Part shown: positions 193 to 37,419 of the stretch, piece by piece | Layout of the letters: every line of letters begins with the position of its first letter | How positions within the stretch are numbered: the stretch's first letter is position 1 | Source of the DNA: Macrostomum lignano | Lineage: Eukaryota | Reading direction: 5' to 3' | Length of the DNA: 64,000 nucleotides | NCBI GenBank assembly: GCA_002269645.1 | Contig: NIVC01000725.1 | Span: forward strand, 582,269-646,268 | Made by a program: the position numbers and the translations under genes | The notes under the pieces: generated by a model | Seen by the model: only the letters and a program-made list of their open reading frames with translations | Told to the model about the DNA's origin: nothing | The model's database searches: none

Positions 193-883
193 GAAAGGAA
201 AGGCTGAGTCATGGGCGGATTTTAAGTGCAGTAAAAATGAATATTTTGCATGAAGGCAGTGACAAACATTTTATCCATATTACATAAATGTTAAAATATT
301 GTAAGCATAATTATTATTACAAAGAGGCGATATGGCATTAAGAATTGGCAAAGCATTTGCTTAACAGCTTAGAAAAATTCAAATTAAAGCAGCAACGGAT
401 ATTACATACTCGTAGAATATTTGAATTTCTTGAATATTGTTAAGAGTAAACTTTTAAATCGCAAAAATGACAAATTTACATGTACATTTAGGGTATATAT
501 TCTGAACTATATAAATTTTAATAAGCATCAGCATGCAGAGGAAAAATGATAATTGAAATGATTTGGAAACAAAATCATCTACTTTGTAATTTTAAATCTC
601 AAATAACGATTGCACAGGAACTTACATCTTGCATGTAATGTCACTTTGTATCAGTTTTAGCTTACGTGTTTGTTGGTTATCACAAAAATTATTGTATACA
701 CCGCGTTTTAAAGTGATAGGAATTGTCATGTCTCATAACTTAGAATGCAGCAGACTGCGGATGCATGTTATTGTGAAGTATATCTTGCTGGGTTTCGAGA
801 GAGTTCATTCGAGGTCATCTTCACAATCCTTTCTCCCTGAAAAAGAGCACAGCGTGAGGAAGAATGTAAGACATTACAGTTTG

Positions 884-1425
884 GAGAGGAGGCGCCACTG
901 AGGCATCGGGGAGGGGGAGGCGCCACTGAAGCATCGGGGAGGAGGAGGCGCCCACTGAAGCATCGGGAAGGGGAAGGCGCCACTGAAGCATCGGGGAGGA
1001 GGAGGCGCCCACTGAAGCATCGGGAAGGGGAAGGCGCCCACTGAAGCATCGGGGAGGAGGAGGCGCCACTGAAGCATCGGGGAGGAGGAGGCGCCCACTG
1101 AAGCATCGGGAAGGGGAAGGCGCCCACTGAAGCATCGGGGAGGAGGAGGCGCCACTGAAGCATCGGGGAGGAGGAGGCACCCACTAAAGCATCAGGGAGG
1201 AGGAGGCGCCCACTGAAGCATCGGGGAGGAGGAGGCGCCCACTGAAGCATCGGGAAGGGGGAGGCGCCCACTGAAGCATCGGGGAGAAGGAGGCGCCCAC
1301 TGAAGCATCGCGGAGGAGGAGGTGCCCACTGAAGCATCGGGGGGGGGGGAGGCGCCCACTGAAGCATCGGGGAGGAGGAGGCGCCCACTGAAGCATCGCG
1401 GAGGAGGAGGTGCCCACTGAAGCAT

Positions 1426-1469
<44 letters not shown>

Positions 1470-1565
1470 GGAGGCGGCCACTGAAGCATCGCGGAGGAGG
1501 CGCCCACTGAAGCATCGGGGAGGGGGAGGCGTCACTGAAGCATCGGGGAGGCACCCGCTGAAGCA
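884..1565. repeat. 26-28-bp G-rich minisatellite (GAGGAGGCGCCCACTGAAGCATCGGG) with a poly-G run of about 40 nt
   Basis: About 24 tandem units; G run at about 1427-1468; explains the overlapping Pro-rich ORFs. Confidence 0.95.
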
Positions 1566-1599
1566 TCAGGGAGCCGCTGGCACAGAACGGGCGGGTCAC

Positions 1600-4500: not shown

Positions 4501-6192
4501 GCACCAACTGACACAAATTGGCACCAACTGACACAAATTGGCACCAACTGACACAAATTGGTACCAACTGACACAAATTGGCACCAACTGACACAAATTG
4601 GCATTAACTGACACAAATTGGCACCAACTGACACAAATTGGCACCAACTGACACAAATTGGCACCAACTGACACAATTGGCATTAACTGACACAAATTGG
4701 CACCAACTGACACAAATTGGCACCAACTGACACAAATTGGCACCAACTGACACAAATTGGTACCACCTAGCTGACACAAACTGATACACAATTTCAGTTA
4801 CCTGCAATTCCTGTTTTGCAACCTCAGCGTCCACCCGACTCTTGAAAGTGACAAAACCGACTGGCTGGAAAAAATTGAATGATTATTTTACAAAACTATA
4901 ACAAAAAGCTACATGAAATGTACATACATATGCATCCCATGCACAGATTACTCACACACATGAGTTTGCCCAATTTTTGAGCAAAACTTTTCAACTGAGC
5001 ATTTTCAAAGCCCTGAAATTTTATGGATAGATTTTTGGAGAAAAATTGCATTGGAACCGTATAATGTATAATATTTGAAATTCGGTGACTCACATTGAAA
5101 GCTCGAAACAACAGGTACAGCTCTCGAGGCTTCGTGTCCATTGGCAGCCCGCTGACGAACAGGGTTCGCACCTGATATTTAAAAGCAACAATTATAGAAA
5201 TTTACCAATTTCTGTTTTAATGAATTAACTTTGCTAGAAGCAAGAAGTGTTCTGCCAATGCTACTTAAAAGTAGGATGACCGGTTTCAGAGATTCGTAAT
5301 CGTAGTTTTAATCTGCAAGGAAAAATCTAATTTAAGAAGCAACAATTTACAAACAAATTTACAGACTCATAAAACCTAACTTACTTAGCTTAACCTAAAT
5401 GTAATTTCATAAACCAAGTGATCGGGATCAAGAACTGTCTAATTTATATAGTTGCGTCTGCTATGAGTGTGGTTTATTGAACTCCTTTCTAGGAATGCAT
5501 TTCCAAGAATCGATGTTCAACACTAACATTTCAAGTTATTCAAATTTTAAACCAAAATTTTCAATAAAATGATTATATTGGATTTGTTTAATATGGAGTC
5601 TTCAAATTAATTTTAGAAATCCGCCCAACAATATGCCGATATAACATTCGCATTTTTACCAAGCATTCATCCTGAGAAATAGAACAAAGCCGCAACTATA
5701 TTATTAAGACAATTACTAATTTAGTAATTACTTGTAAATTTGAATTTCTTGTTAGTAATTTGTAAATTTTTGACAGAGAAACGGTGAGAAAAATAATGTA
5801 CGAATACGCGACAGTCTTCCCTAAATATAGTTATTATCGGTACAATTGTTTGTTAATTTGAATCAAACTCAAATTAGCGCCAAAATTATTTGCGTTATGA
5901 AAACTCAAAGTTTAAAAACAACTAAAACAACTTATCGATTCAACTTCAAGACAGAATTTTAATGTTTCTACTTTTTCGTTTGATAAACTTTTTGGCGCGG
6001 ATTTAAATTAGATAGAAATTCAACAAATTAAAGAAGACTGCCGAGTACATGTCAGCTCGTGATTAAATGAATTTTTTGACTCTCAATCCGTCTCACCTCG
6101 TCGTCCACACAGGCATTGACGCTATCCATGCTCTGGCTAAGCGCCATGCTGGTCTCGCTGTTTAGTGCACCGGGTGACACCATGTCTCTCAT
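1600..6192 (-). CDS. cpo: RNA-binding protein of the couch potato / RBPMS / MEC-8 family (RRM1 complete, start of RRM2), multi-exon, probably 3'-partial
   Basis: Exons with GT-AG ends: 6192/6183-6097 (..[18 protein letters not shown]), 5171-5094 ([26 protein letters not shown]), 5012-4956, 4864-4802 ([21 protein letters not shown]), 3628-3496 ([27 protein letters not shown]..), 3149-2995 ([16 protein letters not shown]..), about 1967-1600 (poly-Ala/Gly, then [22 protein letters not shown]). These motifs match cpo/RBPMS as I recall them. The junction between the last two exons is uncertain. Confidence 0.92.
2063..2762. repeat. 40-bp intronic minisatellite (GGGGTGGTCACTTGACCCCATTCTATGACAGCTGCTGAGA), about 17 units
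   Basis: Direct reading; each unit holds a GGTCA-NN-TGACC palindrome. Confidence 0.95.
3808..4785. repeat. 20-bp intronic minisatellite (ACAAATTGGCACCAACTGAC), about 48 units
   Basis: Direct reading; source of the [10 protein letters not shown] pseudo-ORFs. Confidence 0.95.
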
Positions 6193-7002
6193 TCAATTAT
6201 GCTTTCTTAGTTGAATTGCTAGGATTCTGTGTGGCGGTACGTGATATTGTGGCGGCTGTTAGTGCGTGAGCGCGGATTCATCGTAAATTGATTGGAATTT
6301 TATAGTGAAATTGAAGCTGCAGGTTTAACGCGTACAGTAAAAATCGTCATTTTGTAATTGATTACGTTCCAAATAAATGCTTGCAGGCATGTAATAGCAA
6401 AATGCATCATGGATGAAGGATGTACAATTGATGTCTTGTTTGGCTTAATAGACAGAGTATTTGACACCTACATGTATTTTAAAACCATGTATTCGATGGA
6501 GCCCCTGGGTGTTTTAGATTCACTTCCTTCATCCATGAGAGCAAGTGCTACATGAAGTAACAGTGTAGTGAACCAATCAGTCAGTCATTAATATGAAACA
6601 GTAGTAGTTTTAATTTATTGAACAAATCCAAATTGTAATGTATGGGGGCAGACAATGGGCCGTGATTGATCTGAATTTGTCATTTTGTCAATATGGCAAA
6701 GTAAAGCATGAGCTGCACATTTTGTTTTAGTATAATTGCATGTAACGAACATGAGCATTTACATTAGCTAGGTAATTGCGTGAATTGAATTGTGATTCAG
6801 AATCGATTTTATTACTAAACCGTAACCAATCAGGAAGAGCCCCACTGTACAATACACGATAGCATATCATGATGTGTAACACTGTTCTCAACTCTATTCG
6901 GGTCGTTCTGCGTTCAATCTTTCAGAATCACTTGGTCAAAGACAGCTGTATAATAAAATTTTATAAAACTTCCTCCTAAATTCCTGTCTTCGATCCTGCT
7001 TC

Positions 7003-10000
7003 CCTGGTGCTAAAGCCCCTGGTGCTAAATCCCCTGATGCTAAATCCCCTGGTGCTAAATCCCCTGTTGCTAAATCCCCTGGTGCTAAATCCCCTGGTGC
7101 TAAAGCCCCTGGTGCTAAATCCCCTGATGCTAAATCCCCTGGTGCTAAATCCCCTGTTGCTAAATCCCCTGGTGCTAAATCCCCTGGTGCTAAAGCCCCT
7201 GGTGCTAAATCCCCTGGTGCTAAATCCTTTGGTCCTAAATCCCCTGATGCTAAATCCCCTGGTGCTAAATCCCCTGGTGCTAAATCCTTTGGTGCTAAAG
7301 CCCCTGGTGCTAAATCCCCTGGTGCTAAATCCCCTGGTGCTAAATCCCCTGGTGCTAAATCCCCTGGTGCTAAATCCCCTGGTGCTAAAGCCCCTGGTGC
7401 TAAATCCCCTGGTGCTAAATCCCCTGGTGCTAAAGCCCCTGGTGCTAAATCCTTTGGTGCTAAATCTCCTGGTGCTAAATCCCCTGGTGCTAAATCCTCT
7501 GGTGCTAAAGCCACTGGTGCTAAAGCCACTGGTGCTAAATCTCCTGGTGCTAAAGCCCCTGGTGCTAAATCCGCTGGTGCTAAATCTCCTGGTGCTAAAG
7601 CCACTGGTGCTAAATCTCCTGGTGCTAAAGCCTCTGGTGCTAAATCCGCTGGTGCTAAATCTCCTGGTGCTAAAGCCACTGGTGCTAAATCTCCTGGTGC
7701 TAAAGCCCCTGGTGCTAAATCCGCTGGTGCTAAATCTCCTGGTGCTAAAGCCCCTGGTGCTAAATCCGCTGGTGCTAAATCTCCTGGTGCTAAAGCCACT
7801 GGTGCTAAATCTCCTGGTGCTAAAGCCCCTGGTGCTAAATCCGCTGGTGCTAAATCTCCTGGTGCTAAAGACCCTAATGCTAAATCCTTTGGTGCTAAAT
7901 CCGCTGGTGCTAAATCTCCTGGTGCTAAAGCCACTGGTGCTAAATCTCCTGGTGCTAAATCCCCTGGTGCTAAAGCCCCTGGTGCTAAATCCCCTGATGC
8001 TAAATCCCCTGGTGCTAAATCCCCTGTTGCTAAATCCCCTGGTGCTAAATCCCCTGGTGCTAAAGCCCCTGGTGCTAAATCCCCTGATGCTAAATCCCCT
8101 GGTGCTAAATCCCCTGGTGCTAAATCCCCTGTTGCTAAATCCCCTGGTGCTAAAGCCCCTGGTGCTAAATCCCCTGGTGCTAAATCCTTTGGTCCTAAAT
8201 CCCCTGATGCTAAATCCCCTGGTGCTAAATCCCCTGGTGCTAAATCCTTTGGTGCTAAAGCCCCTGGTGCTAAATCCCCTGGTGCTAAATCCCCTGGTGC
8301 TAAATCCCCTGGTGCTAAATCCCCTGGTGCTAAATCCCCTGGTGCTAAAGCCCCTGGTGCTAAATCCCCTGGTGCTAAATCCCCTGGTGCTAAAGCCCCT
8401 GGTGCTAAATCCTTTGGTGCTAAATCTCCTGGTGCTAAATCCCCTGGTGCTAAATCCTCTGGTGCTAAAGCCACTGGTGCTAAAGCCACTGGTGCTAAAT
8501 CTCCTGGTGCTAAAGCCCCTGGTGCTAAATCCGCTGGTGCTAAATCTCCTGGTGCTAAAGCCACTGGTGCTAAATCTCCTGGTGCTAAAGCCCCTGGTGC
8601 TAAATCCGCTGGTGCTAAATCTCCTGGTGCTAAAGCCACTGGTGCTAAATCTCCTGGTGCTAAAGCCCCTGGTGCTAAATCCGCTGGTGCTAAATCTCCT
8701 GGTGCTAAAGCCCCTGGTGCTAAATCCGCTGGTGCTAAATCTCCTGGTGCTAAAGCCACTGGTGCTAAATCTCCTGGTGCTAAAGCCCCTGGTGCTAAAT
8801 CCGCTGGTGCTAAATCTCCTGGTGCTAAAGCCCCTAATGCTAAATCCTTTGGTGCTAAATCCGCTGGTGCTAAATCTCCTGGTGCTAAAGCCACTGGTGC
8901 TAAATCTCCTGGTGCTAAATCCCCTGGTGCTAAATCCCCTGGTGCTAAATCCCCTGGTGCTAAATCCCCTGGTGCTAAATCCCCTGGTGCTAAATCCCCT
9001 GGTGCTAAATCCCCTGGTGCTAAATCCCCTGGTGCTAAATCCTCTGGTGCTAAAGGCCCTGTGTGCTAAATCCCCTGGTGCTAAATCCCCTGGTGCTAAA
9101 GCCACTGGTGCTAAAGCCCCTGGTGCTAAAGCCCCTGGTGCTAAAGCCCCTGGTGCTAAAGCCCCTGGTGCTAAATCCCCTGGTGCTAAAGCCCCTGGTG
9201 CTAAATCCCCTGGTGCTAAAGCCCCTGGTGCTAAAGCCCCTGGTGCTAAATCCCCTGGTGCTAAAGCCCCTGGTGCTAAATCCGCTGGTGCTAAATCTCC
9301 TGGTGCTAAAGCCACTGGTGCTAAATCTCCTGGTGCTAAAGCCCCTGGTGCTAAAGCCCCTGGTGCTAAATCCGCTGGTGCTAAATCTCCTGGTGCTAAA
9401 GCCCCTAATGCTAAATCCTTTGGTGCTAAATCCGCTGGTGCTAAATCTCCTGGTGCTAAAGCCACTGGTGCTAAATCTCCTGGTGCTAAAGCCCCTGGTG
9501 CTAAATCCGCTGGTGCTAAATCTCCTGGTGCTAAAGCCACTGGTGCTAAATCTCCTGGTGCTAAAGCCCCTGGTGCTAAATCCGCTGGTGCTAAATCTCC
9601 TGGTGCTAAAGCCCCTGGTGCTAAATCCGCTGGTGCTAAATCTCCTGGTGCTAAAGCCACTGGTGCTAAATCTCCTGGTGCTAAAGCCCCTGGTGCTAAA
9701 TCCGCTGGTGCTAAATCTCCTGGTGCTAAAGCCCCTAATGCTAAATCCTTTGGTGCTAAATCCGCTGGTGCTAAATCTCCTGGTGCTAAAGCCACTGGTG
9801 CTAAATCTCCTGGTGCTAAATCCCCTGGTGCTAAATCCCCTGGTGCTAAATCCCCTGGTGCTAAATCCCCTGGTGCTAAATCCCCTGGTGCTAAATCCCC
9901 TGGTGCTAAATCCCCTGGTGCTAAATCCCCTCGTGCTAAATCCTCTGGTGCTAAAGGCCCTGTGTGCTAAATCCCCTGGTGCTAAATCCCCTGGTGCTAA

Positions 10001-10500
10001 AGCCACTGGTGCTAAAGCCCCTGGTGCTAAAGCCCCTGGTGCTAAAGCCCCTGGTGCTAAAGCCCCTGGTGCTAAATCCCCTGGTGCTAAAGCCCCTGGT
10101 GCTAAATCCCCTGGTGCTAAAGCCCCTGGTGCTAAATCCGCTGGTGCTAAATCCTCTGGTGCTAAAGCCCCTGGTGCTAAATCCCCTGGTGCTAAAGCCC
10201 CTGGTGCTAAAGCCCCTGGTGCTAAATCCCCTGGTGCTAAAGCCCCTGGTGCTAAATCCCCTGGTGCTAAAGCCCCTGGTGCTAAATCCCCTGGTGCTAA
10301 ATCCTCTGGTGCTAAAGCCCCTGGTGCTAAATCTCCTGGTGCTAAAGCCCCTGGTGCTAAAGCCCCTGGTGCTAAATCCGCTGGTGCTAAATCTCCTGGT
10401 GCTAAAGCCCCTAATGCTAAATCCTTTGGTGCTAAAGGCCCTGTGTGCTAAATCCGCTGGTGCTAAAGGCCCTGTGTGCTAAATCCCCTCTTGCTAAAAG
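7003..10500. repeat. 15-bp satellite (GGTGCTAAATCCCCT), about 230 units, with higher-order blocks
   Basis: Unit variants GCC/TCT/ACT/GCT. Lines 7021 and 7981, and 7201 and 8161, are identical (960-bp period). 16-bp units at about 9047, 9947, 10427 and 10458. Confidence 0.97.
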
Positions 10501-11464
10501 CCCCACAAACGAACCATTTAGAAATCAACGGCTGCCTACACAACCAAGTGATTCCGTCTCATCATTTATAATCGAACACAAAACAGCTAGGCTTTAAGGA
10601 GCGCCAATATCTTTCTTTCTCGAATGACTATGATAGAAAATACAATATTGAAACATTCGATAGTTACTCACCCCGCAGCTGCGACAATGGGCTCATTCAA
10701 GTTCTTATACTTCAGAGTGGCTCTGATCGAAACAGTAAACTTGGCTCAGAAAGAATTAAGTCTTATATACCGGTGACCAGATCAAGGGACGACCCCCCCC
10801 CGCAGCCACCGAGTGAGTGTTAAATGATTAATGAGAGCGCACAGCCAATGATGAGATGACCCTTGCTCATCAGTGACAGAAACAGAAAGACAGGCATTCA
10901 TTGCCCGCCCGTTGTGTCATACAGCAGCCTCCATGCTGTGTTTCGCAATTCTACCACCGCAGCGAAAGTGAATTATTTATTAGAAGTGACGATCCCCCTA
11001 CAAGCCGTGTTCTCAAGCAGTTGCCAATCTGCACTGCGGGGCACTCATTAATTGTGTAGTAAGATTGCCAGACCACACACACGCATGCGCGCTCTTGGAC
11101 ACAACTGGCAGAAGTAGGTAGGTAAGTAGCTAGAGACAACGCTGGAATACAAATTACCTTGCTGAAGTTGTGCGGCCTATAATAAAAAATAGCATTAATT
11201 ACAGGCGACCTACCACGACATCAAAAATTACATTTAAAAAGGTGGAAACCCTTAAAATCAACGTAGATTACCCCGAAGCTCTAATTGCAGTATAAAATTA
11301 ATAATTAATGAGCCATCTACATCAAAATAACTGTGAACTGGTGAATTCTACTGTGGTCTTGAGATCGCAATAAACTTGAAGAACTATAAATTATTAATGA
11401 GAATTGCATTAAAGTTTCCTGTGCTCAAAGATGAGGATAGAAAAACAGAGGTTTGTGATAAAGT

Positions 11465-12068
11465 GAGCGCTGGATGGAAGTGAGCACTCCTAAAAAGGGA
11501 GTAAGCACTCTGAAGATCACTCTTGATCTCCTCTTGAGAGTGAGCACTCTGAAGAAAAAGGACTGAGCACTCCTCTTGAGAGTGAGCACTCTGCAGAGAA
11601 TTGATTGAGCACTCCTCTTGAGAGTGAGCACTCTGAAGGAAGAGAGTGAGCAGTCTGAGGAAAGAGAGTGAGCACTCTGAAGGAAGAGAGTGAGCAGTCT
11701 GAGGAAAGAGAGTGAGCAGTCTGAGGAAAGAGAGTGAGCAATCTGAGGAAAGAGAGTGAGCAGTCTCAGGAAAGAGAGTGAGCAGTCTGAGGAAAGAGAG
11801 TGAGCAATCTGAGGAAAGAGAGTGAGCAGTCTGAGGAAAGAGAGTGAGCAATCTGAGGAAAGAGAGTGAGCAGTCTGAGGAAAGAGAGTGAGCAGTCTGA
11901 GGAAAGAGAGTGAGCAGTCTGAGGAAAGAGAGTGAGCAATCTGAGGAAAGAGAGTGAGCAGTCTGAGGAAAGAGAGTGAGCAATCTGAGGAAAGAGAGTG
12001 AGCAGTCTGAGGAAAGAGAGTGAGCAGTCTGAGGAAAAAGAGTGAGCAGTTTGAGGAAAGAGTGAGCT
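11465..12068. repeat. 22-bp minisatellite (GAGTGAGCAGTCTGAGGAAAGA) with degenerate left units
   Basis: Direct reading. Confidence 0.92.
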
Positions 12069-12729
12069 GTCTCCCTAAAATAGTTAAAAAAGAAATTAAA
12101 ACCACTTTTTTCAGAATGGAATATTTATGAGTAACTTAATTGGCAGCAGCAAAAATCAAAAAGATTTTATTTTCATTTCGCTCTCAAGTAATATTTAGTA
12201 TTATAACTATTTTTACTACTGTTATAGATATTATACAAACCTTCCATTAGCATAATAATGGCCACAGCTTACTGTGAGATACTATTAGCATTAAAAATAT
12301 TACTAAACGACAATTATGACTAAAACATCGCTGATACAGTACTTGTAAGTCAGTAGTAGCATTGGAAAATATCGTATCATGCAGTATGGCAACAAATCTA
12401 TTCTAGCTCTTAATAAGACTAATAACGAAAACTAATCATAAGCAATTTACTAAGACACACACCTACTACTGTATGAATGTCAGTAGTATATAGAAATTTA
12501 TCGACTAAGTTCAAAATGATGGAAGGAATAGGGGTGGCTGAACACTGATAAGTTTGAAATGGGAGTCAAGCTGGTTGCACAACTGGCACCAAAAATATAA
12601 ATCAACTGAGTCTGAGAATTTAAATCGCTGAGTCTACAGGCACCCAATCTAACCTCGAATTGCAAACGGATTCGTAAAAAATTACGCTATTTCAGCAACA
12701 ACAGCATTGGCAAAGATAAGAAGATAGAA

Positions 12730-12802
12730 TGGACAGACAGACACTAATTCGGACAGGCAGACAGATACTAAGACAGACAGACAGACAGACACTTAGACAG
12801 AC

Positions 12803-12847
<45 letters not shown>

Positions 12848-13026
12848 CTTAGACAGACAGACAGACAGATAGACAGACACTAAGACAGACAGACAGACAG
12901 ACACTTAGACAGACAGACAGACAGACAGACAGACACTTAGACAGACAGACAGACAGATAGACAGACACTAAGACAGACAGACAGACAGACAGACAGACAG
13001 GCAGACAGACAGATAGACAGACACTA

Positions 13027-13071
<45 letters not shown>

Positions 13072-13094
13072 CTTAGACAGACAGATAGACAGAC

Positions 13095-13139
<45 letters not shown>

Positions 13140-13140
13140 C
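12730..13140. repeat. (AGAC)n microsatellite with CACTAA/CACTTA interruptions
   Basis: Direct reading. Confidence 0.95.
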
Positions 13141-13292
13141 GTAAAGGTCAAACGTGAGCAAATCTACCACAGAGAAGCACAAAAATCAGGAAACGAACGC
13201 CGGCAGTGAAATACTGGATCCTGGCTCTGGCAACTAAGCGCGCAATCAGTCAGTCCATAGTCCAAGTGACCCAGAGTAGGAAATTTAATAAA

Positions 13293-13472
13293 CTACTTCC
13301 AAAGCTTGTTAAACAGCTCCATAAAGCTGTCATAAATCATAAACGTGATGGCAACGTCCAGGCAGACTCGGCTGAGACGAGGCACCGTGCCCTTGTAGAA
13401 TCTGCAATGTTAACATTTTAAAGCCGTAAGACTACAGTAGTGTTAGTAGTAGTAGTAGTAGTAGTAGTAGTT

Positions 13473-13505
<33 letters not shown>

Positions 13506-15050
13506 CTAGTAGTACTAGTAGTAGTAGTGCACATTGCTTACGCAAGCGGCCCCTCCTCCCGCCAGATCTTGACGAAGCAGTGCGCGGTGCTGCGGTACTT
13601 GTGCGCCTCCAGGCCCTGCATTCGAGTCTTCACCACATCGATCGGCGTGTTGCCGAACACGGAAGCCGCCCCGGCCACTGCGCCAAACATGCCAGTCAGC
13701 AGCTTCGGGATCGGCCTCGTGTTGTCCGTGTCACCGCGGTAGCCCCTGTACCAGTCCTTCAGCGACTCCACCACCAGGAACCGGATGGCCTGGTTCGAGC
13801 CCTGCTTCATCATCGTGGCCGTCAAGCCCTGGTAGCAGCCCCGAAGCCCCTGCTCGCGCACAATCTCCCGGACACCGTGGAAGAAGCCGCGGAACTTTGG
13901 GTTCGCCGAGTTCTGGTCGTTGATGAACTTCACCTTCACCGTCTCCATGGGCGTCACGGCGAAGATCGCCTCGCAGATGCCGGCGCCGAGGCCGCACAGA
14001 AACTTCCGGCCGGTGCTCAGGTTGCCCTGCGCGTCCGAGTTGCGCTTCTTGAACTCCTCGAATGCGCCGAACCTTTGGCGGGGTTGTTAGATGGCGAGGC
14101 TTTTGGCTGGCTCAGCGCACGCATACTTACTCCTGCTGACTACCCTAACCATCTATGTAGAAAGCTAACAAGCTGGCGAGGCATTTCGCTAGCAAAAGCT
14201 GGTAAAGTTACTCCTGCTGACTACCCGCATAACACCAGAGACGATCAGTTAAAACTCAAGTAAGTATCAATAAACTTCGAAGAATCGTGACTTGCAGATC
14301 CTAACCTACAGAACCCTATTTGCAATTCCTAACTAACGAATATCTAATCTAAAAATCACAACCCACAAATCCCAACCTAAAAATCCCAATCTACAAATCC
14401 CAAAGCTCAAATCCCAAAACGCCCCGCGCGTCCGAGGTGCGCTTCTTGAACTCCTCGAATGCGCCAAACTTTTGGCGGGGTTGTTAGATGGCGAGGCTTT
14501 TGGCAGCCTAAGCGCACGCATAGTTACTCTTGCTGACTACCCGATAAACATCAAAATCTATGATGCGAAACCCTCAACCAAATCGCAACTTACTAATTAA
14601 CCTACAAATCCCAAAGCCCAAATCCCATCAACAAGCCCCTCTCTCACCTCACAGCGGACTTGGGAATCGAGCCATACAGCAGCACACTCAGGCCTCGGTA
14701 CAAGCCGAAGAAGCCCCGCTCCCTGACCGTCACCTTCACGCAGTCGATCGGCCCCTTGTACCGCTTCTGGGCGCCCACCTTCTCGTCCAACTGCAGCTGG
14801 GTCTTCACGTACTCTGTTGGGAATGTGATGCAGATCTCCATGCCTCCCGTGATGCCGCCTGAGGGACAGAGTTTGGCGTGGCTTTCTGGCTTGGCCTCTT
14901 AATATAAACATTTTCCATTTCATAAATCCATCTCTCACCTGCAATAATGCCTTTAAGGCTCTTGTTGCTGCTTCCAGAAGCAGCTGCTGCAGCTGCAGAC
15001 ACTCTCTGGTTTGGTCTGCCAGCGCTGAACACCAGGCCACGGTCTGACAT
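13293..15050 (-). CDS. SLC25A1: Mitochondrial tricarboxylate (citrate) carrier, copy A, 4 exons, 320 aa
   Basis: Exons 15050-14939, 14858-14648, 14072-13542 and 13401-13293 (112+211+531+109 = 963 nt), GT-AG. Carrier signatures [24 protein letters not shown] and [12 protein letters not shown]; ends [35 protein letters not shown]. An optional in-frame ATG lies at 15113. Confidence 0.93.
13435..13528. repeat. (GTA)n microsatellite in intron 3 of SLC25A1 copy A
   Basis: Direct reading. Confidence 0.95.
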
Positions 15051-16928
15051 GACGAGAGCTGCAGGTGCATGCAAATAAAATTCGCATGCTGGCTTTAATG
15101 CTACATAATTCATTGGTGATTTTTAAAACAAATTAAACTGTAACTACATAACTTTCTTCTGCAATAAAAGCTAGCAGTCATATTGTTGGAAGAAAAATGG
15201 CAAGCAATAGTAGGTAATTATTGTCATACTGTCACAGGCAATAAAATTTGGTAGTCAAATGTTTTAAACACTGTTTTCATTTTGGTTGCTACCACAAATG
15301 CCTTGGTATATTTTCTACTTAAAGAATTTTATAAAAAATTACAAATATTTTTATTTATATAAATGGCAAATATACTAAACCTAAGGCTAAACTTGATTAG
15401 TTTTTTTGCAAACAATGGATATTATACTAATATACTATACTATAAAATTTAAAATCGCATGCACTATACAGGATTCAATATATAATATAAGGCCAAGGCT
15501 CATCATGTTTTAATTTAAATAGGCATACTAATATTGGGCTTAAAAATTCTTTATGCCAATGCCAAGTAGGCACTTGACTTGAGTCTCGGGGCAAAAGTAT
15601 ACTAATTTTTTTGCAATCAAGGCCACATTCCAGACTATCAAATGTTTAACAGTCAATATGACTATCATAAGACATAGACTATGAAGGGTATATTTTTAGG
15701 CTAAGTGTTTCTAGTTTATAAAAATGCTAAAAATGTTATCAAAACAAGAAAACCTTTAGGTTTTTATCTAGTGTCATAGTGGTTAAAATGATTATTGTTT
15801 TAGATCAAAGTTAATACATACAATAATACAAACTATTGATTTTATTAGATTAGATATTACTAAATTATTCTGTAATGGATGGTAATAAAAACCTAAACCA
15901 TACATTTGCACACAAACCTAGTGTACAAACAAGGTCTCATCATTTTTTCCTGCATTAAACTTGGGCGAACAATAAGACACAATCCAAACGAAACTATGGT
16001 ATGCCAGGAAACCCTGGAGTACATGTTGCCTTCCAAACTATGGCCAAATATGAAGTCTAACTCAAGTATATTAATATTCTTGACTCTAGGCACTAGCAAT
16101 CATCTTTTAACAAGGTTAGCTTTAACCATAATGCAATGACCACCCTTATGATTAAAGTGATATAGTCATGGTCTTATATTTATTTCCATATTTTTGACTG
16201 ACAACCAGTTTACAGTGCAAAACAACTAATTAAAATAGCAAAACACAAGTGTAGAGGGATCTGCAACAAAATAACTAACAATAAACGACACAGATATAAA
16301 GATTTAATATCAAAACTAGATAGTAGACAAATATATTATAAATGAAGACTGCTAGCCTCTACTTCTTTCTTGTCCTAGACCTAAAGTCGTGATTAATTAA
16401 CAGTATCATTATTATTTAGTTCTGCAGTCGCTGATTGTGGTCAACGATTGTGGCGCAGCACGATTTTTGTTGTCCTGCGCCATGCTGCTGCCAGATTAGA
16501 AATTGTTGTCAAAAAAATAAAACACATTTTTATGGCGATCATATTTTTTCATTTGAATCAAAACTAACTCACAAAAAGTTGAAACTAAAAAACCGGTTAT
16601 TAAAAATCTGGAAAACTAGTCCGCTATCGTGTAAATGGGACATTTTAAAAGAAAGAGAAAAATTTGCAATAAAAAAATATAAGTTTTTTAACTTAATCTA
16701 TTTTATATATTAAAATTTTAAAACTGTACACTGTGTACTGTTAAAATACGCGTCAAAAAAACTTTGACGTAAAATGCTTTGTTAAAGTTTGGACAAGAAT
16801 CAACATCAGTATTCAAATGCTTCAATCAGCGATATTTAAACGTGTACACTACTTGACTAGTACGACTTTAATCAAATAGTCAAACAATAGTCAAACATAT
16901 TGTTTCGACTTTATTATGGGCCAGCTCT

Positions 16929-17465
16929 TACCGTCAGCAAGAAACGGCCACTATCCAAAAATTATTAATTAATTTTTTGTTTGTAACATCTGAACTGAAT
17001 ATATATATACCCCTTACTGAGAGAGATTGATTACTTACGACTTTCGTAAGTACCGTCAGCAAGAAACGGCCACTATCCAAAAATTATTAATTAATTTTTT
17101 GTTTGTAACATCTGAACTGAATATATATATACCCCTTACTGAGAGAGATTGATTACTTTCGTAAGTAAAGTACTTTCGTAAGTACCGTCAGCAAGAAACG
17201 GCCACTATCCAAAAATTATTAATTAATTTTTTGTTTGTAACATCTGAACTGAATATATATATACCCCTTACTGAGAGAGATTGATTACTTACGAAAGTTA
17301 CGAAAGTTACGAAAGTTACGAAAGTAATCAATCTCTCTCAGTAAGGGGTATATATATATTCAGTTCAGATGTTACAAACAAAAAATTAATTAATAATTTT
17401 TGGATAGTGGCCGTTTCTTGCTGACGGTACTTACGAAAGTAATCAATCTCTCTCAGTAAGGGGTA
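16929..17465. repeat. Tandem plus inverted repeat (foldback): three direct copies of a ~107-bp unit, (TTACGAAAG)x4, one full inverted copy and one partial inverted copy
   Basis: TACCGTCAGCAAGAAACGG...GAGAGATTGATTAC starts at 16929, 17051 and 17183; its reverse complement lies at about 17325-17430 and, partially, 17439-17465. Confidence 0.95.
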
Positions 17466-19680
17466 ATGTACTTATGTACTAATGTTAAATTTAATCTAGT
17501 AATCTTTAAAATAGTTATGTAGCGTAGGCCATGGCATAGGCTACAAAAAGTTTAAATGCTGATTCAATCCCAAAAATCGTTAAACCCTATATGGTTTACT
17601 AATTTTTACTTGAATCATTTCCCTCCTTTTTAATTTATTTTGCAATCCTAATTTAAGCTGCCAGTGCCACGCCTGCCACTGCCAGTGCCAGCAGCTGTAA
17701 TTTTTATCTCAAGTAAACAATACTTCAAGGATTATTGTTGTCATTAACTTAATGTTTATTGCCAAAATAGTTTAAATTTTATTAGCCTAAATAGCTTATC
17801 TCCTTTAATTTAGGACTTGGCTATAGTAGCTATAGTAGTATCTTGACATATTTATCTTATTTTCTATAGCTACAAAATATTTTATATGCTGTAATATGCA
17901 CTGATCATATTACTAAGTCTTTGATGATGAATGATACTTTGACTGACTAGTGCCTTGACAGCTTAACTCTAAATAATAAGCAAGAACTTCACAAGCATTA
18001 GTCTTTGTAATAAATTTCAGTTTCAACTTAGGCCTAGTAATTTTGTTATAATTTGATTAATGCAAATCACCATAAGATGTAATATACAATTATTATATAT
18101 AGTGTACATTATAGCACCTATTTTTATGTAGCACCTAATATATATTATATATATTATATTTTTATAGTGATTTGCATTAATATATATATACTGTTGCATA
18201 CTAGCCTTAAGTATAAAGGCAGAGTTTTATTTATTATTATTGCTACATACAAATAGCCATGTCAAGCCATAAACTCTAATGAAAAGCTATGGCTATAGGT
18301 CGTGAAGCAATCCAAGTCAATGAGCTTGGGGATAATAAAATGAGAAAGATCAGAGCTGATCATATTTAAGACAAGCCAGACTTGCATACCATTGCTACAA
18401 TAATTGTGTGTGGCTTCTTCAAGACAAAGGGAGCTAGCTAACTAAAAAGTACAAGGCTGAATTGCAAAACAGAAAGTACAAATAATTGGAGGATGGAAAT
18501 CCAACACTAAATAAGTGTTACAGGTATAATTGTTCCTAGTTACTAATGCCACCAAGTTGTAGCAGGCCTATTTACTCCTTGTCTAAATTTCACCATTTTA
18601 ATCACTAGATTGTACTACTAAATCTATTATTTCTAATCCTAAGAATCCCAATAATTAAACCTATATGTACATATATGGGCTATCGTCAGTACGAGTTACC
18701 CTGGTAGCTTCAGTTCCCAAGTGGCAATACATTGCTTACTACTATACTAATAATTACTACTAATTTCTAAATTACTTAGTCTAAACATGGCATTCCACTA
18801 ACCAAGGGGTTTCCAGCTTTAATACTGTCTTTCCCAATTTAATACTATATTATGCTTGTAATAGCCTAGATCTATTCTTAGGGAATCCTCTCTCCTTACT
18901 GGGCAATCCACCTTTTCTGCTTAGCAAAATGCTTGTTTGGCAATCCCTATTTAACTGCACTGGCAAAACGCCCTTTTTATCCAATATGGTCTTTCCAAAC
19001 TTGTAATCCTGCTTAAATAACTAAGAAAGTAAGACCAGAGAAATCTTAATTTCTAGGTTACTGAGTATTGAACCCAACAAAGGAGTTAAGGAAAATGTTT
19101 AGTATTTCACCTTGTATTTATACTAACTGAAACCTCTCTCTATTGGCTTGGGTTACATTTGTTTAAACAACATTTAGTTAAAACAAATATCATCATATTA
19201 AAACAAAATATTTGTATAACTGTTATTTGGCAGGAATTTGACTTACAAACATGTTAATATTTTCTTATAACAAGATATGAGCCCTACTGCATAAGCATTG
19301 TTAATTTTCTATCTAGGCTTTAAAGTTTTAGATTAACTCTATATCTACTAAAACATGGGACAAATGCACAAAAGTAATAAAATATTCTGTATTATATAAT
19401 GATCATACTTAAAAAAACAGTTTTTTGATAGGAGTTTTAGCAAACCTTTCAAGATAATTAATTGTTTTTCAAAAGAATTTTATTCCTTTACTTTAAATCT
19501 AAATCTAAAAAGCACCATTTTAATCTTTTTTTCTTTTAATAAAAAGAGCAGTTAAAAATGCTTCTTCTACTAAATGATAGCACTGAGCTTATAGAATTGT
19601 ACAACCTTAGCCTAATCAATTTATCCAATTTTTTATCGTGAGTTTGGAAATCCCATTTTGCATCTCCTGCAGCTCTCATC

Positions 19681-21618
19681 ATGTCAGACCGTGGCCTGGT
19701 GTTCAGCGCTGGCAGACCAAACCAGAGAGTGTCTGCAGCTGCAGCAGCTGCTTCTGGAAGCAGCAACAAGAGCCTTAAAGGCATTATTGCAGGTGAGAGA
19801 TGGATTTATGAAATGGAAAATGTTTATATTAAGAGGCCAAGCCAGAAAGCCACGCCAAACTCTGTCCCTCAGGCGGCATCACGGGAGGCATGGAGATCTG
19901 CATCACATTCCCAACAGAGTACGTGAAGACCCAGCTGCAGTTGGACGAGAAGGTGGGCGCCCAGAAGCGGTACAAGGGGCCGATCGACTGCGTGAAGGTG
20001 ACGGTCAGGGAGCGGGGCTTCTTCGGCTTGTACCGAGGCCTGAGTGTGCTGCTGTATGGCTCGATTCCCAAGTCCGCTGTGAGGTGAGAGAGGGGCTTGT
20101 TGATGGGATTTGGGCTTTGGGATTTGTAGGTTAATTAGTAAGTTGCAATTTGGTTGAGGGTTTCGCATCATAGATTTTGATGTTAATCGGGTAGTCAGCA
20201 AGAGTAACTATGCGTGCTCTTAAGCTGCCAAAAGCCTCGCCATCTAACAACCCCGCCAAAAGTTTGGCGCATTCGAGGAGTTCAAGAAGCGCACCTCGGA
20301 CGCGCAGGGCGTTTTGGGATTTAGGCTTTGGGATTTGTAGGTTGGGATTTGTGGGTTGGGATTTTTAGATTAGATATTCGTTAGTTAGGAATTGCAAATA
20401 GGGTTCTGTAGGTTAGGATCTGCAAGTCACGATTCTTCGAAGTTTATTGATACTTACTTGAGTTTTAACTGATCGTCTCTGGTGTTATGCGGGTAGTCAG
20501 CAGGAGTAACTTTACCAGCTTTTGCTGGCGAAATGCCTCGCCATCTTGTTAGCTTTCTACATAGATGGTTAGGGTAGTCAGCAGGAGTAAGTATGCGTGC
20601 GCTGAGCCAGCCAAATGCCTCGCCATCTAACAACCCCGCCAAAGGTTCGGCGCATTCGAGGAGTTCAAGAAGCGCAACTCGGACGCGCAGGGCAACCTGA
20701 GCACCGGCCGGAAGTTTCTGTGCGGCCTCGGCGCCGGCATCTGCGAGGCGATCTTCGCCGTGACGCCCATGGAGACGGTGAAGGTGAAGTTCATTAACGA
20801 CCAGAACTCGGCGAACCCGAAGTTCCGCGGCTTCTTCCACGGTGTCCGGGAGATTGTGCGCGAGCAGGGGCTTCGGGGCTGCTACCAGGGCTTGACGGCC
20901 ACGATGATGAAGCAGGGCTCGAACCAGGCCATCCGCTTCCTGGTGGTGGAGTCGCTGAAGGACTGGTACAGGGGCTACCGCGGTGACACGGACAACACGA
21001 GGCCGATCCCGAAGCTGCTGACTGGCGTGTTTGGCGCAGTGGCCGGGGCGGCTTCCGTGTTCGGCAACACGCCGATCGATGTGGTGAAGACTCGAATGCA
21101 GGGCCTGGAGGCGCACAAGTACCGCAGCACCGCGCACTGCTTCGTCAAGATCTGGCGGGAGGAGGGACTCAAGGCGTGAGTGAAGCTTGGGTTTCTTGGA
21201 AATAATTTGTTTGTTTTAAGCTGCTGTACACTCTGTGTGAGCCCTTGTGTGCATCATCAAGGATTCAGACTGCAAGAGCTAACGTGTAGTTCTTTCTGCG
21301 GATTCTACCGGTATATACAGGTCTTCCAAGATAAACAATTTTGCAAATATTCTTACCCTACTTACAGTAGAAATTGCAAAAAATATTGCGCGTATATTAA
21401 CAAGAATGATGCACTTTTAAGTACTCTACTTGCAGTAGAAATACAAAGAAAAAATCGTGAAAATTTAAATGATATTTTTTTAAATGTGTTTTCAATCATC
21501 TCTTTGCAGATTCTACAAGGGCACGGTCCCCAGGCTCAGCCGAGTCTGTCTTGACGTTGGCATCACGTTTATGATTTATGACAGCTTTATGGAGCTGTTT
21601 AACAAAATCTGGAAGTAA
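19681..21618 (+). CDS. SLC25A1: Mitochondrial tricarboxylate (citrate) carrier, copy B, 4 exons, 320 aa
   Basis: Exons 19681-19792, 19873-20083, 20645-21175 and 21510-21618, the same lengths as copy A, GT-AG; ends [35 protein letters not shown]. Confidence 0.93.
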
Positions 21619-23346
21619 AAGGCGCCGTTTAAGTAACTGAACTGGATGATTAAAGTCGCTGATAATTTTTTTACTTTAAGTTTCGCTAGCAACTTTATTT
21701 AGCAGTATCTTGATGGCTCATGCCCAGATATTAATGCTTTTATTCGATTTTAAAATTAAATTTAGATTTTTTTTGTCAGCCATCGTCTTAGATTATTAGA
21801 AAACCTATCGGACTGTAGTTAGAGGTTTTCGCTAATTGTCAGTAGAGGTGTCAGACTTTTCAGACTTGTCAGAATTTTCTCAGGCAAACGTATTCTATTT
21901 GTTTCTGTTGTGCAATGCGGCAGAATCTATGAAGAAACTTATTATTAATAGTAGTTCCCTGAGCGCATAATTTTTTACTTTAAAAAAATGTTTGAACTTA
22001 TCCACTTCCAGGTTGATTATTCCGTTTTTTTATTTTTGTCTACTCATATAAGTAGTTGCACTCGCGCTTTTTAGTCAGTTGCACAAGCTATTGAATTTGC
22101 ATCTAATCTATGTAATTTACACGAAAAGGGTTGTTATAATTTGCCGAAGGTTGTAATACCATTTATAAACGATTACTTTTGCTTTTTTGTAGATTTTTTA
22201 GCCAAACAATACAGTCCATATGATTTATTTAACCTATTTTGTGGTTAAATTACTTTTTATTTTTTATTAACCTTTTGCAACCAGTTTTGTTAAAATTGTT
22301 GACAATAATTTCACTTGCCAGATACGATTGGCCTGCTTTTTGCGGCATTTTGCGTCATAAAACAGTTATTTAAAAAAAAAATCTAAAATATGTGTATGGA
22401 GGCGCGATGGTCACTTTAAAAAAGTAATAATTTGTTTTTAATTTTTTTATGGACTTATTAATTATTTATTTGATTACTTACCAATGAATAAATTCTTTGT
22501 GAAAATTATCACTGTTCTATGCATAATACTTCATATAATAATATTATTTTCATAAATATTCCATTTAGATTCACTTCTAGTTAGATAGTCAATTTAATTT
22601 CGTTGTGCGTTATGTCTTCTTAGCTTTTAATTTTATTATTTTTTGTCTCTGGCTGTTGGTTGAAGTTAAAGTGATATGAACTTTATTTCTAAGAAACACG
22701 AGAAAAAAATATAACGATGAAATTGAGACAGCCATAAATATTTTATTGATTTGCTTATTTGTAGAAGTTTTAGGCCTATTAAAATTTTTAAATATGCTGA
22801 TTGAGAATTTTATTGCTTTTTTTTACTGTAGACACCATTTTTAGCACCTTCAGCGTCACTCCTTAAGATGTCACTCATTGAGTTTCACTCCTTCAGTTTC
22901 ACTATTCAGCATCAATCCTTGAGCGTCACTCGATTAAGTGCCATCCCGAGTTTAAGAAGCTGTGCGCAAAAGCCATGACTTCAACATTTAAGCTTTAGAT
23001 TGAAGCAAGTACGTTCACAGTGAAACAGTGAACTGTCAATGGTTACACGGGCTGAAGTTTATTTTTAAAACAAAATTATTTTGTTTTGCGACGCTTCGAC
23101 AATAAAGAAAAGCAAATTTTCATCTTTGCTAGAGGGACGCAAAATATTGCATTGAAATAAGAATGATTCATACTCGTGCAATTCAATTACTCTGAGTAGT
23201 ATGATTACAGTATTAACCATAATTAGATTTTGAAGAAATTTTCCAGTTTCGAAATTATCAGCGATTTACATTTGTAAATGACGATATAGAGGCTGTTCAT
23301 GGCGGCAAGATAACAATAGGCCAGAGGTGTCAGTATATAAATAGTG

Positions 23347-25335
23347 AGATTTCAGTATAGAGACAGTGGGATGTGAGATTTCAGTATAGAGACAGTGGGA
23401 TGTGAGATTTCAGTATAGAGACAGTGGGATGTGAGATTTCAGTATAGAGACAGTGGGATGTGAGATTTCAGTATAGAGACAGTGGGATGTGAGATTTCAG
23501 TATAGAGACAGTGGGATGTGAGATTTCAGTATAGAGACAGTGGGATGTGAGATTTCAGTATAGAGACAGTGGGATGTGAGATTTCAGTATAGAGACAGTG
23601 GGATGTGAGATTTCAGTATAGAGACAGTGGGATGTGAGATTTCAGTATAGAGACAGTGGGATGTGAGATTTCAGTATAGAGACAGTGGGATGTGAGATTT
23701 CAGTATAGAGACAGTGGGATGTGAGATTTCAGTATAGAGACAGTGGGATGTGAGATTTCAGTATAGAGACAGTGGGATGTGAGATTTCAGTATAGAGACA
23801 GTGGGATGTGAGATTTCAGTATAGAGACAGTGGGATGTGAGATTTCAGTATAGAGACAGTGGGATGTGAGATTTCAGTATAGAGACAGTGGGATGTGAGA
23901 TTTCAGTATAGAGACAGTGGGATGTGAGATTTCAGTATAGAGACAGTGGGATGTGAGATTTCAGTATAGAGACAGTGGGATGTGAGATTTCAGTATAGAG
24001 ACAGTGGGATGTGAGATTTCAGTATAGAGACAGTGGGATGTGAGATTTCAGTATAGAGACAGTGGGATGTGAGATTTCAGTATAGAGACAGTGGGATGTG
24101 AGATTTCAGTATAGAGACAGTGGGATGTGAGATTTCAGTATAGAGACAGTGGGATGTCAGTATAGAGACAGTGGGATGTCAGTAGAGACAGTAGGATGTC
24201 AGTATAGAGACAGTGGGATGTCAGTAGACAGTGGGGTGTCAGTTTAGAGACAGTGGGATGTCAGTAGACAGTGGGATGTCAGTTTAGAGACAGTGGGATG
24301 TCAGTTTAGAGACAGTGGGATGTCAGTAGACAGTGGGATGTCAGTTTAGAGACAGTGGGATGTCAGTATAGAGACAGTGGGATGTCCGTATAGAGACAGT
24401 GGGATGTCCGTATAGAGACAGTGGGATGTCCGTATAGAGACAGTGGGATGTCCGTATAGAGACAGTGGGATGTCAGTATAGAGACAGTGGGATGTCAGTA
24501 GAGACAGTGGGATGTCAGTTTAGAGACAGTGGGATGTCAGTAGACAGTGGGATGTCAGTTTAGAGACAGTGGGATGTCAGTATAGAGACAGTGGGATGTC
24601 CGTATAGAGACAGTGGGATGTCCGTATATAGACAGTGGGATGTCCGTATAGAGACAGTGGGATGTCCGTATAGAGACAGTGGGATGTCCGTATAGAGACA
24701 GTGGGATGTCCGTATATAGACAGTGGGATGTCCGTATAGAGACAGTGGGATGTCCGTATAGAGACAGTGGGATGTCCGTATAGAGACAGTGGGATGTCAG
24801 TATAGAGACAGTGGGATGTCAGTATAGAGACAGTGGGATGTCAGTATAGAGACAGTGGGATGTCAGTATAGAGACAGTGGGATGTCAGTATAGAGACAGT
24901 GGGATGTCAGTATAGAGACAGTGGGATGTCAGTATAGAGGCAGTGGGATGTCAGTATAGAGACAGTGGGATGTCAGTACAGAGACAGTGGGATGTCAGTA
25001 TAGAGGCAGTGGGATGTCAGTATAGAGACAGTGGGATGTCAGTACAGAGACAGTGGGATGTCAGTATAGAGGCAGTGGGATGTCAGTATAGAGACAGTGG
25101 GATGTCAGTACAGAGACAGTGGGATGTCAGTAGACTGGGATGTCAGTTTAGAGACAGTGGGATGTCAGTAGCCAGTGGGATGTCAGTATAGAGAGTGGGG
25201 TGTCAGTAGAGATAGTGGGTGTCAGTAGAGATAGTGGGGTGTCAGTAGAGACAGTGGGGTGTCAGTAGAAATAGTGGGGGTGTCAGTAGAGATCGATAAA
25301 TGTCAGTAGAGATAGAGGTGTCAGTCCAGATTTTT
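23347..25335. repeat. Compound minisatellite: about 28 perfect 29-bp units (GTGAGATTTCAGTATAGAGACAGTGGGAT), then 18-22-bp derivatives (GTCAGTATAGAGACAGTGGGAT)
   Basis: The unit switches at about 24157 by loss of GAGATTT and decays toward 25335. Confidence 0.95.
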
Positions 25336-25467
25336 GGGATGTCAGTAGTTCAGGTTTAGAATGCACGGTACTTTCATTATCTAATGGGAATCTTCAACGG
25401 GCAGAAGCGCTGAAAATATTATTTGAATTTCTGACTATTAAAGTATTAAAAGTCAGTGCTGCGGGTG

Positions 25468-37419
<11,952 letters not shown>

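Follow-up and report, generated by a model that had tools for sequence, protein, structure and literature searches.

An inverted pair of SLC25A1-type genes in Macrostomum lignano with a homogenised 5' block and separately diverged tails

How can two neighbouring genes be almost the same over most of their length, introns included, and then part company within a few nucleotides of the end of an exon? This question is raised by two genes, A and B, that lie head-to-head on contig NIVC01000725.1 of the Macrostomum lignano assembly Mlig_3_7 (GCA_002269645.1). They are contained in a stretch of 64,000 nucleotides (nt), positions 582,269 to 646,268 of the contig, which is referred to here as the window and whose own numbering is used throughout. 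Judged from their translations, both genes encode mitochondrial citrate carriers and are orthologues of SLC25A1/scheggia. The best explanation, which we consider very probable, is that A and B are old inverted duplicates in which the 5' 1.5 kb has been homogenised by ectopic gene conversion, while the tail and the flanks have diverged. The elements of the pair are as follows.

13293..15050, minus strand: gene A, A-type citrate carrier, 320 amino acids (aa); exons 15050-14939, 14858-14648, 14072-13542 and 13401-13293 (gene model and translation)
19681..21618, plus strand: gene B, B-type citrate carrier, 320 aa; exons 19681-19792, 19873-20083, 20645-21175 and 21510-21618 (gene model and translation)
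13552..15067, unstranded: left arm of the homogenised tract, in gene A, running from about position -17 relative to the ATG to a point 10 nt short of the exon 3 donor, with exons 1 and 2, introns 1 and 2 and most of exon 3 (alignment)
19664..21166, unstranded: right arm of the homogenised tract, in gene B (alignment)
13542..13551, minus strand: 3' boundary of the tract in gene A, formed by the final 10 nt of exon 3 (G CCG CTT GC; six-gene alignment)
21166..21175, plus strand: 3' boundary of the tract in gene B, formed by the final 10 nt of exon 3 (A CTC AAG GC; six-gene alignment)
13402..13541, minus strand: intron 3 of gene A, 140 nt, mostly TAC/AGT microsatellite (alignment)
21176..21509, plus strand: intron 3 of gene B, 334 nt, 34% GC (alignment)
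13293..13401, minus strand: exon 4 of gene A, a segment of old divergence (gene model)
21510..21618, plus strand: exon 4 of gene B (gene model)
15068..19663, unstranded: spacer, 4.6 kb, 30% GC (composition, family search, alignment)
15059..15064, minus strand: CTGCAG at the 5' limit of the tract, 8 nt ahead of the ATG of gene A, a putative acceptor (sequence; motif from PMC8629364)
19667..19672, plus strand: CTGCAG 8 nt upstream of the gene B start codon, a putative acceptor (sequence; motif from PMC8629364)
14024..14542, minus strand: internal 397-nt tandem duplication in intron 2 of gene A (repeat finder and alignment)

Global alignment and gene models give both genes four exons of the same lengths (112, 211, 531 and 109 nt), GT-AG introns and 320 open codons, and their 5' ends face one another across the spacer. 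A repeat finder recovers the arms as two inverted matches at 98% identity (13551-14404/20313-21166, 854 nt, and 14360-15065/19666-20371, 706 nt), offset by one 14-nt insertion or deletion (indel). Exon 4 forms an inverted match of its own (13294-13422/21489-21617, 129 nt, 87%).

Aligned over its full length, the tract in A (15067-13552) differs from that in B (19664-21166) by 17 substitutions in 1502 aligned nt (98.9% identity) and by the 14-nt indel, which sits in a GGGATTT-like microsatellite of intron 2. Introns 1 and 2 (80 nt and 561-575 nt, ~650 nt together) are ~98% identical. The first 521 nt of exon 3 contain only four differences, at nt 474, 498, 615 and 706 of the coding sequence (CDS); three are synonymous and the fourth exchanges M for V at codon 236. 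Just before the exon 3 donor, six of the seven nt at CDS 846-852 differ (GGG CCG CTT in A, GGA CTC AAG in B). Intron 3 yields no alignment between its 140-nt and 334-nt versions, and exon 4 differs at 11 of 109 nt, including two amino acid changes (A/G 302 and L/I 318) and one TAG/TAA difference. A preliminary description, made from the letters of the window, had called both copies intact and head-to-head, put the arms at about 98% with introns 1 and 2 included, counted four differences in early exon 3, placed a collapse of identity about 10 nt before the exon 3 donor, and described intron 3 as unrelated and exon 4 as differing at 11 of 109 nt, mostly synonymously. All of these observations hold.

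The 5' limit is equally sharp. The tract starts at the CTGCAG hexamer, 8 nt before each ATG; the sole fixed A/B differences nearby are at -3 and -16 from the ATG, and homology between A and B is lost within ~40 nt upstream of it. The 3' flanks are also unalignable. The trans-splice acceptor motif of M. lignano is [T/C]TNCAG (PMC8629364), which CTGCAG fits at both 5' edges. The 5' limit of the tract therefore appears to adjoin a trans-splice-type acceptor, which both genes may use.

Divergence between the two genes has two levels. By the Nei-Gojobori method, the synonymous (dS) and nonsynonymous (dN) divergences are 0.015 and 0.0016 for codons 1-281; for the last 39 codons (282-320) they are 0.52 and 0.076, with a dN/dS ratio (omega) of ~0.15, imprecise values from ~25 synonymous sites. 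Synonymous divergence, which the preliminary description had proposed to follow exon by exon, is thus not uniform, with a 35-fold gap between the two segments. The contrast is significant both for the tract against exon 4 (Fisher p = 7e-7) and for CDS 1-845 against 846-963 (p = 4e-13). Near-identity of the introns together with this two-level divergence argues that DNA was copied between genes A and B.

The pair is replicated elsewhere in the genome. M. lignano is a neopolyploid whose inbred line has three subgenomes (S, L1 and L2) with a difference of 1.4-2.4% in single-nucleotide polymorphisms, and most of its assembly is present in three copies (PMC10733133). Two further contigs of Mlig_3_7, L001 and L002, carry the same head-to-head pair with the same boundaries, and the spacers of the three loci are ~1% apart, which fits the three-subgenome picture. 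Polymorphisms were classed across the six genes of these loci; the "alleles" are therefore subgenome copies from one assembly, which possibly mis-assigns arm haplotypes. In the tract, between the ATG and a point 11 nt short of the exon 3 end, no difference is fixed between A and B, 14 polymorphisms are shared and 6 are private. In exon 4, ten differences are fixed and none is shared, and 6 of the last 10 positions of exon 3 are fixed between types in all three loci. Everything outside the tract in the six-gene alignment (upstream sequence, intron 3, exon 4 and 3' flanks) is type-specific at all three loci, and 17 of 91 informative site pairs fail the four-gamete test. Polymorphism shared between paralogues, without fixed differences, is a standard signature of ectopic gene conversion (PMC3924832). 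As read from this alignment, the A/B distinction is erased inside the tract.

Since the same pair and the same boundaries recur at three loci, the duplication and both boundaries predate the subgenome split. Within a locus, the arms diverge by 1.1-1.2% (~2% in introns), which is about the divergence between subgenomes. Because the arms are as divergent as subgenome copies, the last complete homogenisation is about as old as the split, or older. The preliminary description had proposed an old duplicate pair under purifying selection with recently homogenised 5' parts. Its first part is borne out by the two levels of dS (0.015 and ~0.5), the dN/dS of ~0.15 in the tail and the concordance of the three loci; homogenisation also stands, but "recently" can be taken only in a relative sense.

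These observations suggest the following course of events. A single SLC25A1/scheggia orthologue would have undergone an ancient inverted, head-to-head tandem duplication, giving paralogues A and B, both of which would have remained functional under purifying selection. The upstream DNA, intron 3, codons 282-320 and the 3' flanks would then have diverged independently, while a block of 1.5 kb, which begins near the start codon, ends 10 nt short of the exon 3 donor and takes in introns 1 and 2, would have been overwritten by non-allelic conversion within the inverted repeat. The block may stop where usable homology stops: on the 5' side at unrelated upstream DNA before the trans-splice-type acceptor, and on the 3' side at six mismatches in seven nt followed by the unalignable intron 3. 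With no homology past these limits, heteroduplex or synthesis tracts could presumably go no further. Exon 4 alone (109 nt, 90% identity) would be too short and too mismatched to start an exchange. Conversion through an RNA intermediate was rejected, as the tract contains introns 1 and 2 and neither copy has lost intron 3.

The six arms also carry a record of haplotypes. Three are distinguished within the tract: alpha (window A), beta (L001 A and window B, 6 differences apart) and gamma (L002 A and L001 B, 4 differences apart). In the L002 B arm, the 5' two-thirds are gamma, but two 3' sites show the beta state. Beta is marked, in the coordinates of the A arm, by a 14-nt deletion at 14380-14393 and by positions 14584, 14546, 14408/7, 14358, 14101 and 13922. 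These haplotypes are fully linked at 10 sites and the 14-nt indel over ~800 nt. Between L001 and L002, the A-arm flanks show no difference in 1867 nt (both sides together), whereas the 1473-nt arm between them contains 14 substitutions plus indels (p = 1e-5). Between the window and L001, 21 of 1486 sites differ in the B arm, compared with 5 of 938 in the sequence that flanks it (p = 0.04). Outside the arms, L001 is identical to L002 from 13000 to ~18950 and nearly identical to the window from ~19250 to 21640; L001 is a subgenome recombinant or a haplotype-switched contig, with the switch in the spacer ~450-700 nt upstream of gene B. In the simplest biological history, the ancestral A was of alpha/gamma type and the ancestral B of beta type, an arrangement kept by the window. 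L002 would have undergone a partial A-to-B conversion after the split, and in L001 the arms have apparently been exchanged reciprocally, which would need two crossovers between the inverted arms. If the L001 arms were swapped by error, one post-split event would be left.

Several observations weigh against conversion as proposed here. The arms within a locus are the most different pairs (17 differences in the window, 18 in L001 and 9 in L002), as against 4-7 for the closest pairs across loci. Simple locus-by-locus concerted evolution would produce the opposite, so homogenisation must be slow or old. In a comparison run on the three homeologous loci, paralogues did not prove closer than orthologues; the best matches from outside M. 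lignano are 77-82% identical with unrelated N-termini, and so are not Macrostomum. The assembly itself is a further concern. Canu assembled Mlig_3_7 from noisy PacBio reads, and Pilon polished it with short genomic and RNA-seq reads (PMC5730564); 93% of read pairs map to multiple places, and chimeric scaffolds make up 36% of the assembly length (PMC10733133). The arm is the only six-fold ambiguous sequence at the locus and its diagnostic sites are less than 200 nt apart; short-read polishing could thus have placed arm haplotypes on the wrong arm. The older ML2 assembly came from another assembler but from the same PacBio reads and is not independent data. Base composition gives an inconsistent signal. 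GC content is 42-46% in the tract introns, 34-35% in intron 3 and 30% in the spacer, which is weakly compatible with GC-biased conversion; third codon positions (GC3), ~90% GC in exons 2 and 3, are only 46% GC in exon 1, which lies inside the tract and is at odds with this hint. The main conclusion is nevertheless independent of the haplotype detail, because it is based on the within-locus contrast and on the type-specific flanks.

How well do other explanations account for these data? That no DNA was exchanged, and that the 5' 1.5 kb is merely more constrained by purifying selection or codon bias, would suit a protein that is 73-82% conserved across phyla and whose exons 2 and 3 are so rich in GC3. 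Protein constraint cannot, however, account for introns 1 and 2 being near-identical next to an unalignable intron 3, nor for a 35-fold gap in dS although exon 4 codes for an equally conserved part of the protein, and we regard this explanation as extremely improbable. An assembly artefact, in which a fold-back chimeric read or a mis-join duplicated one gene, is very unlikely. PacBio libraries do yield some fold-back chimeras, and the assembly is redundant and partly chimeric, but a fold-back cannot create copies that differ in upstream DNA, intron 3 and 3' flanks and at ten type-specific sites of exon 4. The three contigs agree, the 4.6-kb spacer is not symmetric, and A-type and B-type proteins both have transcript-based models at NCBI. 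In addition, one ML2 model (P0126) spans the 15-nt array to the left of gene A, exons 3 and 2 of A in antisense and gene B in sense, which reproduces the order and orientation of the pair.

The remaining alternatives accept an exchange of DNA and differ in its timing or mode. There may have been a single old conversion shortly before the subgenome split, all later sharing between A and B, including the L001 "swap", being haplotype switching in assembly or polishing; this is possible, though we doubt it. It would explain why the arms of a locus are as far apart as the subgenomes, and un-swapping the L001 arms gives an ordinary recombinant with a left part from L002 and a right part from the window, as the flanks indicate, after which most beta sites would be near-fixed B-type differences. 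The diagnostic sites lie within the reach of read pairs in an assembly that is chimeric and Pilon-polished. The gamma/beta mosaic of L002 B, however, still needs an A-to-B exchange or a second error, and the long, fully linked haplotypes lie in contigs with otherwise consistent flanks. Reciprocal crossovers between the arms, with repeated flip-flop inversion of the spacer and varying breakpoints, are an unlikely substitute for conversion. Inverted repeats are known to invert their spacers (PMC3723533). The L001 arms (A beta, B gamma) are the exact reciprocal of what the flanks predict (A gamma, B beta), and 566 nt proximally and 139 nt distally are identical in all copies and could host breakpoints. 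Yet the spacer and the type-specific upstream regions point the same way at the three loci, so that crossovers must have occurred in even numbers at every one of them; reciprocal exchange, having no homogenising effect, leaves the low A/B divergence of the tract unexplained; and the haplotypes are subject to the same assembly caveat. Ectopic conversion between old inverted duplicates is thus the reading we retain. As an extension of it, the three loci might record real arm exchanges since the recent whole-genome duplication (a reciprocal swap in L001 by two crossovers, with flip-flop of the spacer, and a partial A-to-B conversion at another locus), with selection keeping the last 39 codons (PL..A..L or LK..G..I) and the regulatory flanks type-specific; we advance this tentatively and think it rather doubtful.

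The identity of the encoded proteins rests on several lines of evidence. In the gene A protein (320 aa), Pfam detects three Mito_carr repeats (PF00153, E = 6.2e-70). Each repeat of this carrier family is marked by PX[DE]XX[KR]X[KR] and by a second motif, [DE]GXXXX[FYW][KR]G. The first motif, in the form PX[DE]XX[KR]X[KR/Q], can be read from the translation as PTEYVKTQ (51-58), PMETVKVK (149-156) and PIDVVKTR (251-258), and the second as E281-G282-(PL/LK)-A-F-Y-K-G289. Among the top 120 database matches, every informatively named protein is a citrate or tricarboxylate transport protein, SLC25A1 or scheggia, at 59-82% identity, the other labels being generic (hypothetical or unnamed protein, mitochondrial substrate or solute carrier); the nearest relatives are thus citrate carriers and not members of other SLC25 subfamilies. 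Identity to invertebrate proteins named citrate transport protein, SLC25A1 or scheggia is 73-82%.

The best match is a 100%-identical M. lignano protein, and the 90% cluster has M. lignano entries only: six NCBI proteins, which form adjacent pairs on three contigs of Mlig_3_7, and five UniProt entries from ML2. The database search returned no M. lignano matches besides this cluster. The contig of the window carries PAA77768 (A) and PAA77769 (B). The gene A protein equals UniProt A0A1I8IU50, and also PAA77768 except for 5 extra N-terminal residues in that model; the gene B protein matches PAA77769. The NCBI models of A and B type are flagged partial and begin 5 and 2 codons, respectively, upstream of the ATG, those of B type (LIMSD...) immediately after CTGCAG. 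Some ML2-derived UniProt models contain errors: in P0126, the translation of a tandem repeat and antisense gene A are joined to gene B; in P0127 there is one W too many; and the C-terminus of P0128 is altered.

The two types are told apart by their C-termini, which read ...EEGPLAFYKG...DVAITF...NKLWK in A and ...EEGLKAFYKG...DVGITF...NKIWK in B. The preliminary description had suggested that PL/LK, M/V, A/G and L/I may mark functional divergence. PL/LK, A/G and L/I are indeed fixed by type, but M/V (codon 236) lies inside the tract and is private to the B copy of the window, with M in the B copies of L001 and L002; the case for functional divergence is therefore weak. In the E-G-x-x-x-x-Y-K-G motif, PL/LK takes up the first two of the variable positions. 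P283 is almost invariant among orthologues, so that L283 of the B type is derived; at positions 284, 302 and 318, which are variable, both states are found among orthologues. Only P283L thus affects a nearly invariant residue, and the type-specific differences as a whole are mild. The closest solved structures (UCP1, UCP2 and the ADP/ATP carrier) are of low identity and add nothing on the four type-specific residues beyond their position in the motif. On thin evidence, selection for distinct C-termini might also help to hold the 3' boundary.

Intron 2 of both genes, at all three loci, contains a tandem duplication of 383-397 nt that carries a decayed copy of the intron 2 acceptor and of the first ~50 nt of exon 3. 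The duplicated segments are at 14024-14145 and 14421-14542 in gene A and at 20189-20310 and 20572-20693 in gene B. This duplicate is a pseudo-exon relic older than the homogenisation, out of frame and with no usable donor. Rfam and ARAGORN searches for a structured RNA or tRNA as a cause of intron conservation found nothing in the window.

In the spacer (15068-19663), no open reading frame (ORF) has a family match. We considered whether the spacer continues the palindrome in decayed form, and rejected this: in a sensitive blastn comparison of its left half with the reverse complement of its right half, only central 130-nt units match. An inversion of the spacer between loci was likewise discarded, the window, L001 and L002 being collinear. 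The central units (16918-17441) are three direct copies of a ~125-132-nt unit followed by one inverted copy, which together give a small, near-perfect palindrome (arms 17171-17305 and 17307-17441, 96%, 1 nt apart). Its centre, 17306, falls only ~55 nt from that of the large palindrome, perhaps by coincidence. Just one copy of the unit is found in each of L001 and L002, the amplification and inversion being specific to the window locus. A candidate relict spliced leader (SL) was noticed just upstream of the mRNA start of gene A (15065-15085, minus strand), where TTTTATTTGCATG resembles the 3' end of the M. lignano SL (…AATTTATTGCATG). This resemblance is at chance level and was dismissed: the window has 2 ungapped SL-like matches against 2.7 expected by chance, and lacks the full SL. 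At the same place upstream of gene A, L002 reads TTTTGCAG, a proper acceptor. A scan of the spacer for bacterial promoters and terminators gave no enrichment and is irrelevant to a eukaryote.

The surroundings of the pair (1-13200 and 22000-39100) are exceptionally dense in long tandem arrays. These include a 15-nt unit over 3.5 kb (7002-10498), 29/22-nt units (23344-25267), 20-nt (26239-28115) and 23-nt units (28737-29698), (GTCT)n (30320-31000) and a 31-nt unit (31422-32908). The part from 24 to 32 kb has strong GC and AT skews, and the arrays make spurious ORFs of up to 987 aa. Further along, an uninterrupted 465-aa ORF on the plus strand (56859-58256) has TRAF-type zinc fingers (PF02176, E = 1.4e-14) and a C-terminal MATH domain (PF22486, E = 8.5e-25), and probably represents a TRAF-like gene. 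A 228-aa ORF on the minus strand (41809-42495) matches the DDE_3 superfamily endonuclease (PF13358, E = 1e-17) and is probably a fragment of a DNA-transposon transposase.

The closest precedents are the Drosophila pairs Hsp70Aa/Hsp70Ab and Amy-p/Amy-d, in which ectopic conversion homogenises inverted genes while their flanks diverge (PMC3924832). Those pairs resemble A and B in being tightly linked, divergently oriented paralogues of a conserved gene with a spacer of a few kb, and in having high identity confined to a block, independently evolving flanks and polymorphisms shared between paralogues. For Amy, the coding region is given as the extent of homogenisation; here the block includes two introns and stops inside the CDS, leaving the last 39 codons type-specific. 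In addition, the identity seen here (98.9%) is no higher than that between homeologues, and the replicates are three subgenomes of one neopolyploid genome rather than different species.

The preliminary description had likened the locus to Y-chromosome palindromes. The likeness stands for the arm-to-arm mechanism, but not for scale. Palindromes of the primate Y and X have arms of ~9 kb to >1 Mb with >99.9% identity and contain whole, mostly testis-expressed gene families (PMC3723533, PMC8600007, PMC8327919). They share with our locus inverted arms, a unique spacer and intrachromosomal arm-to-arm conversion, with occasional spacer inversion and GC bias both possible. The arms described here measure 1.5 kb at 98.9%, hold only part of a single gene of housekeeping type, and lie on chromosomes that are not known to lack recombination. 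The many-kb to Mb arms, >99.9% identity and whole genes of large sex-chromosome-type palindromes are thus absent. With other citrate carriers (SLC25A1, CIC, scheggia (sea)), the proteins share a length of 320 aa, three Mito_carr repeats, the carrier motifs and 73-82% identity; M. lignano differs in that each of its three subgenomes has the gene as an inverted pair, which makes six copies. No paper that connects M. lignano with gene conversion, whether here or elsewhere in its genome, came up in a full-text literature search.

We regard this as a clear-cut but unexceptional instance of gene conversion between inverted paralogues, with no new mechanism. Its interest lies in a conversion tract that covers introns and stops inside an exon, and in subgenome copies that act as built-in replicates and show the boundaries to be old and stable. 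For experimental work, six near-identical citrate-carrier genes with two C-terminal types mean that knock-down, knock-out and expression probes must target exon 4 or the 3' untranslated region, and short-read mapping inside the 1.5-kb block is six-fold ambiguous. Should the exchanges since the whole-genome duplication prove genuine, A and B would be a gene pair with a shared body and a private tail, and a natural system, in a neopolyploid animal, for measuring how fast ectopic exchange proceeds relative to the divergence of subgenomes; if the arm-limited patches are real, the locus could calibrate that rate against post-duplication divergence.

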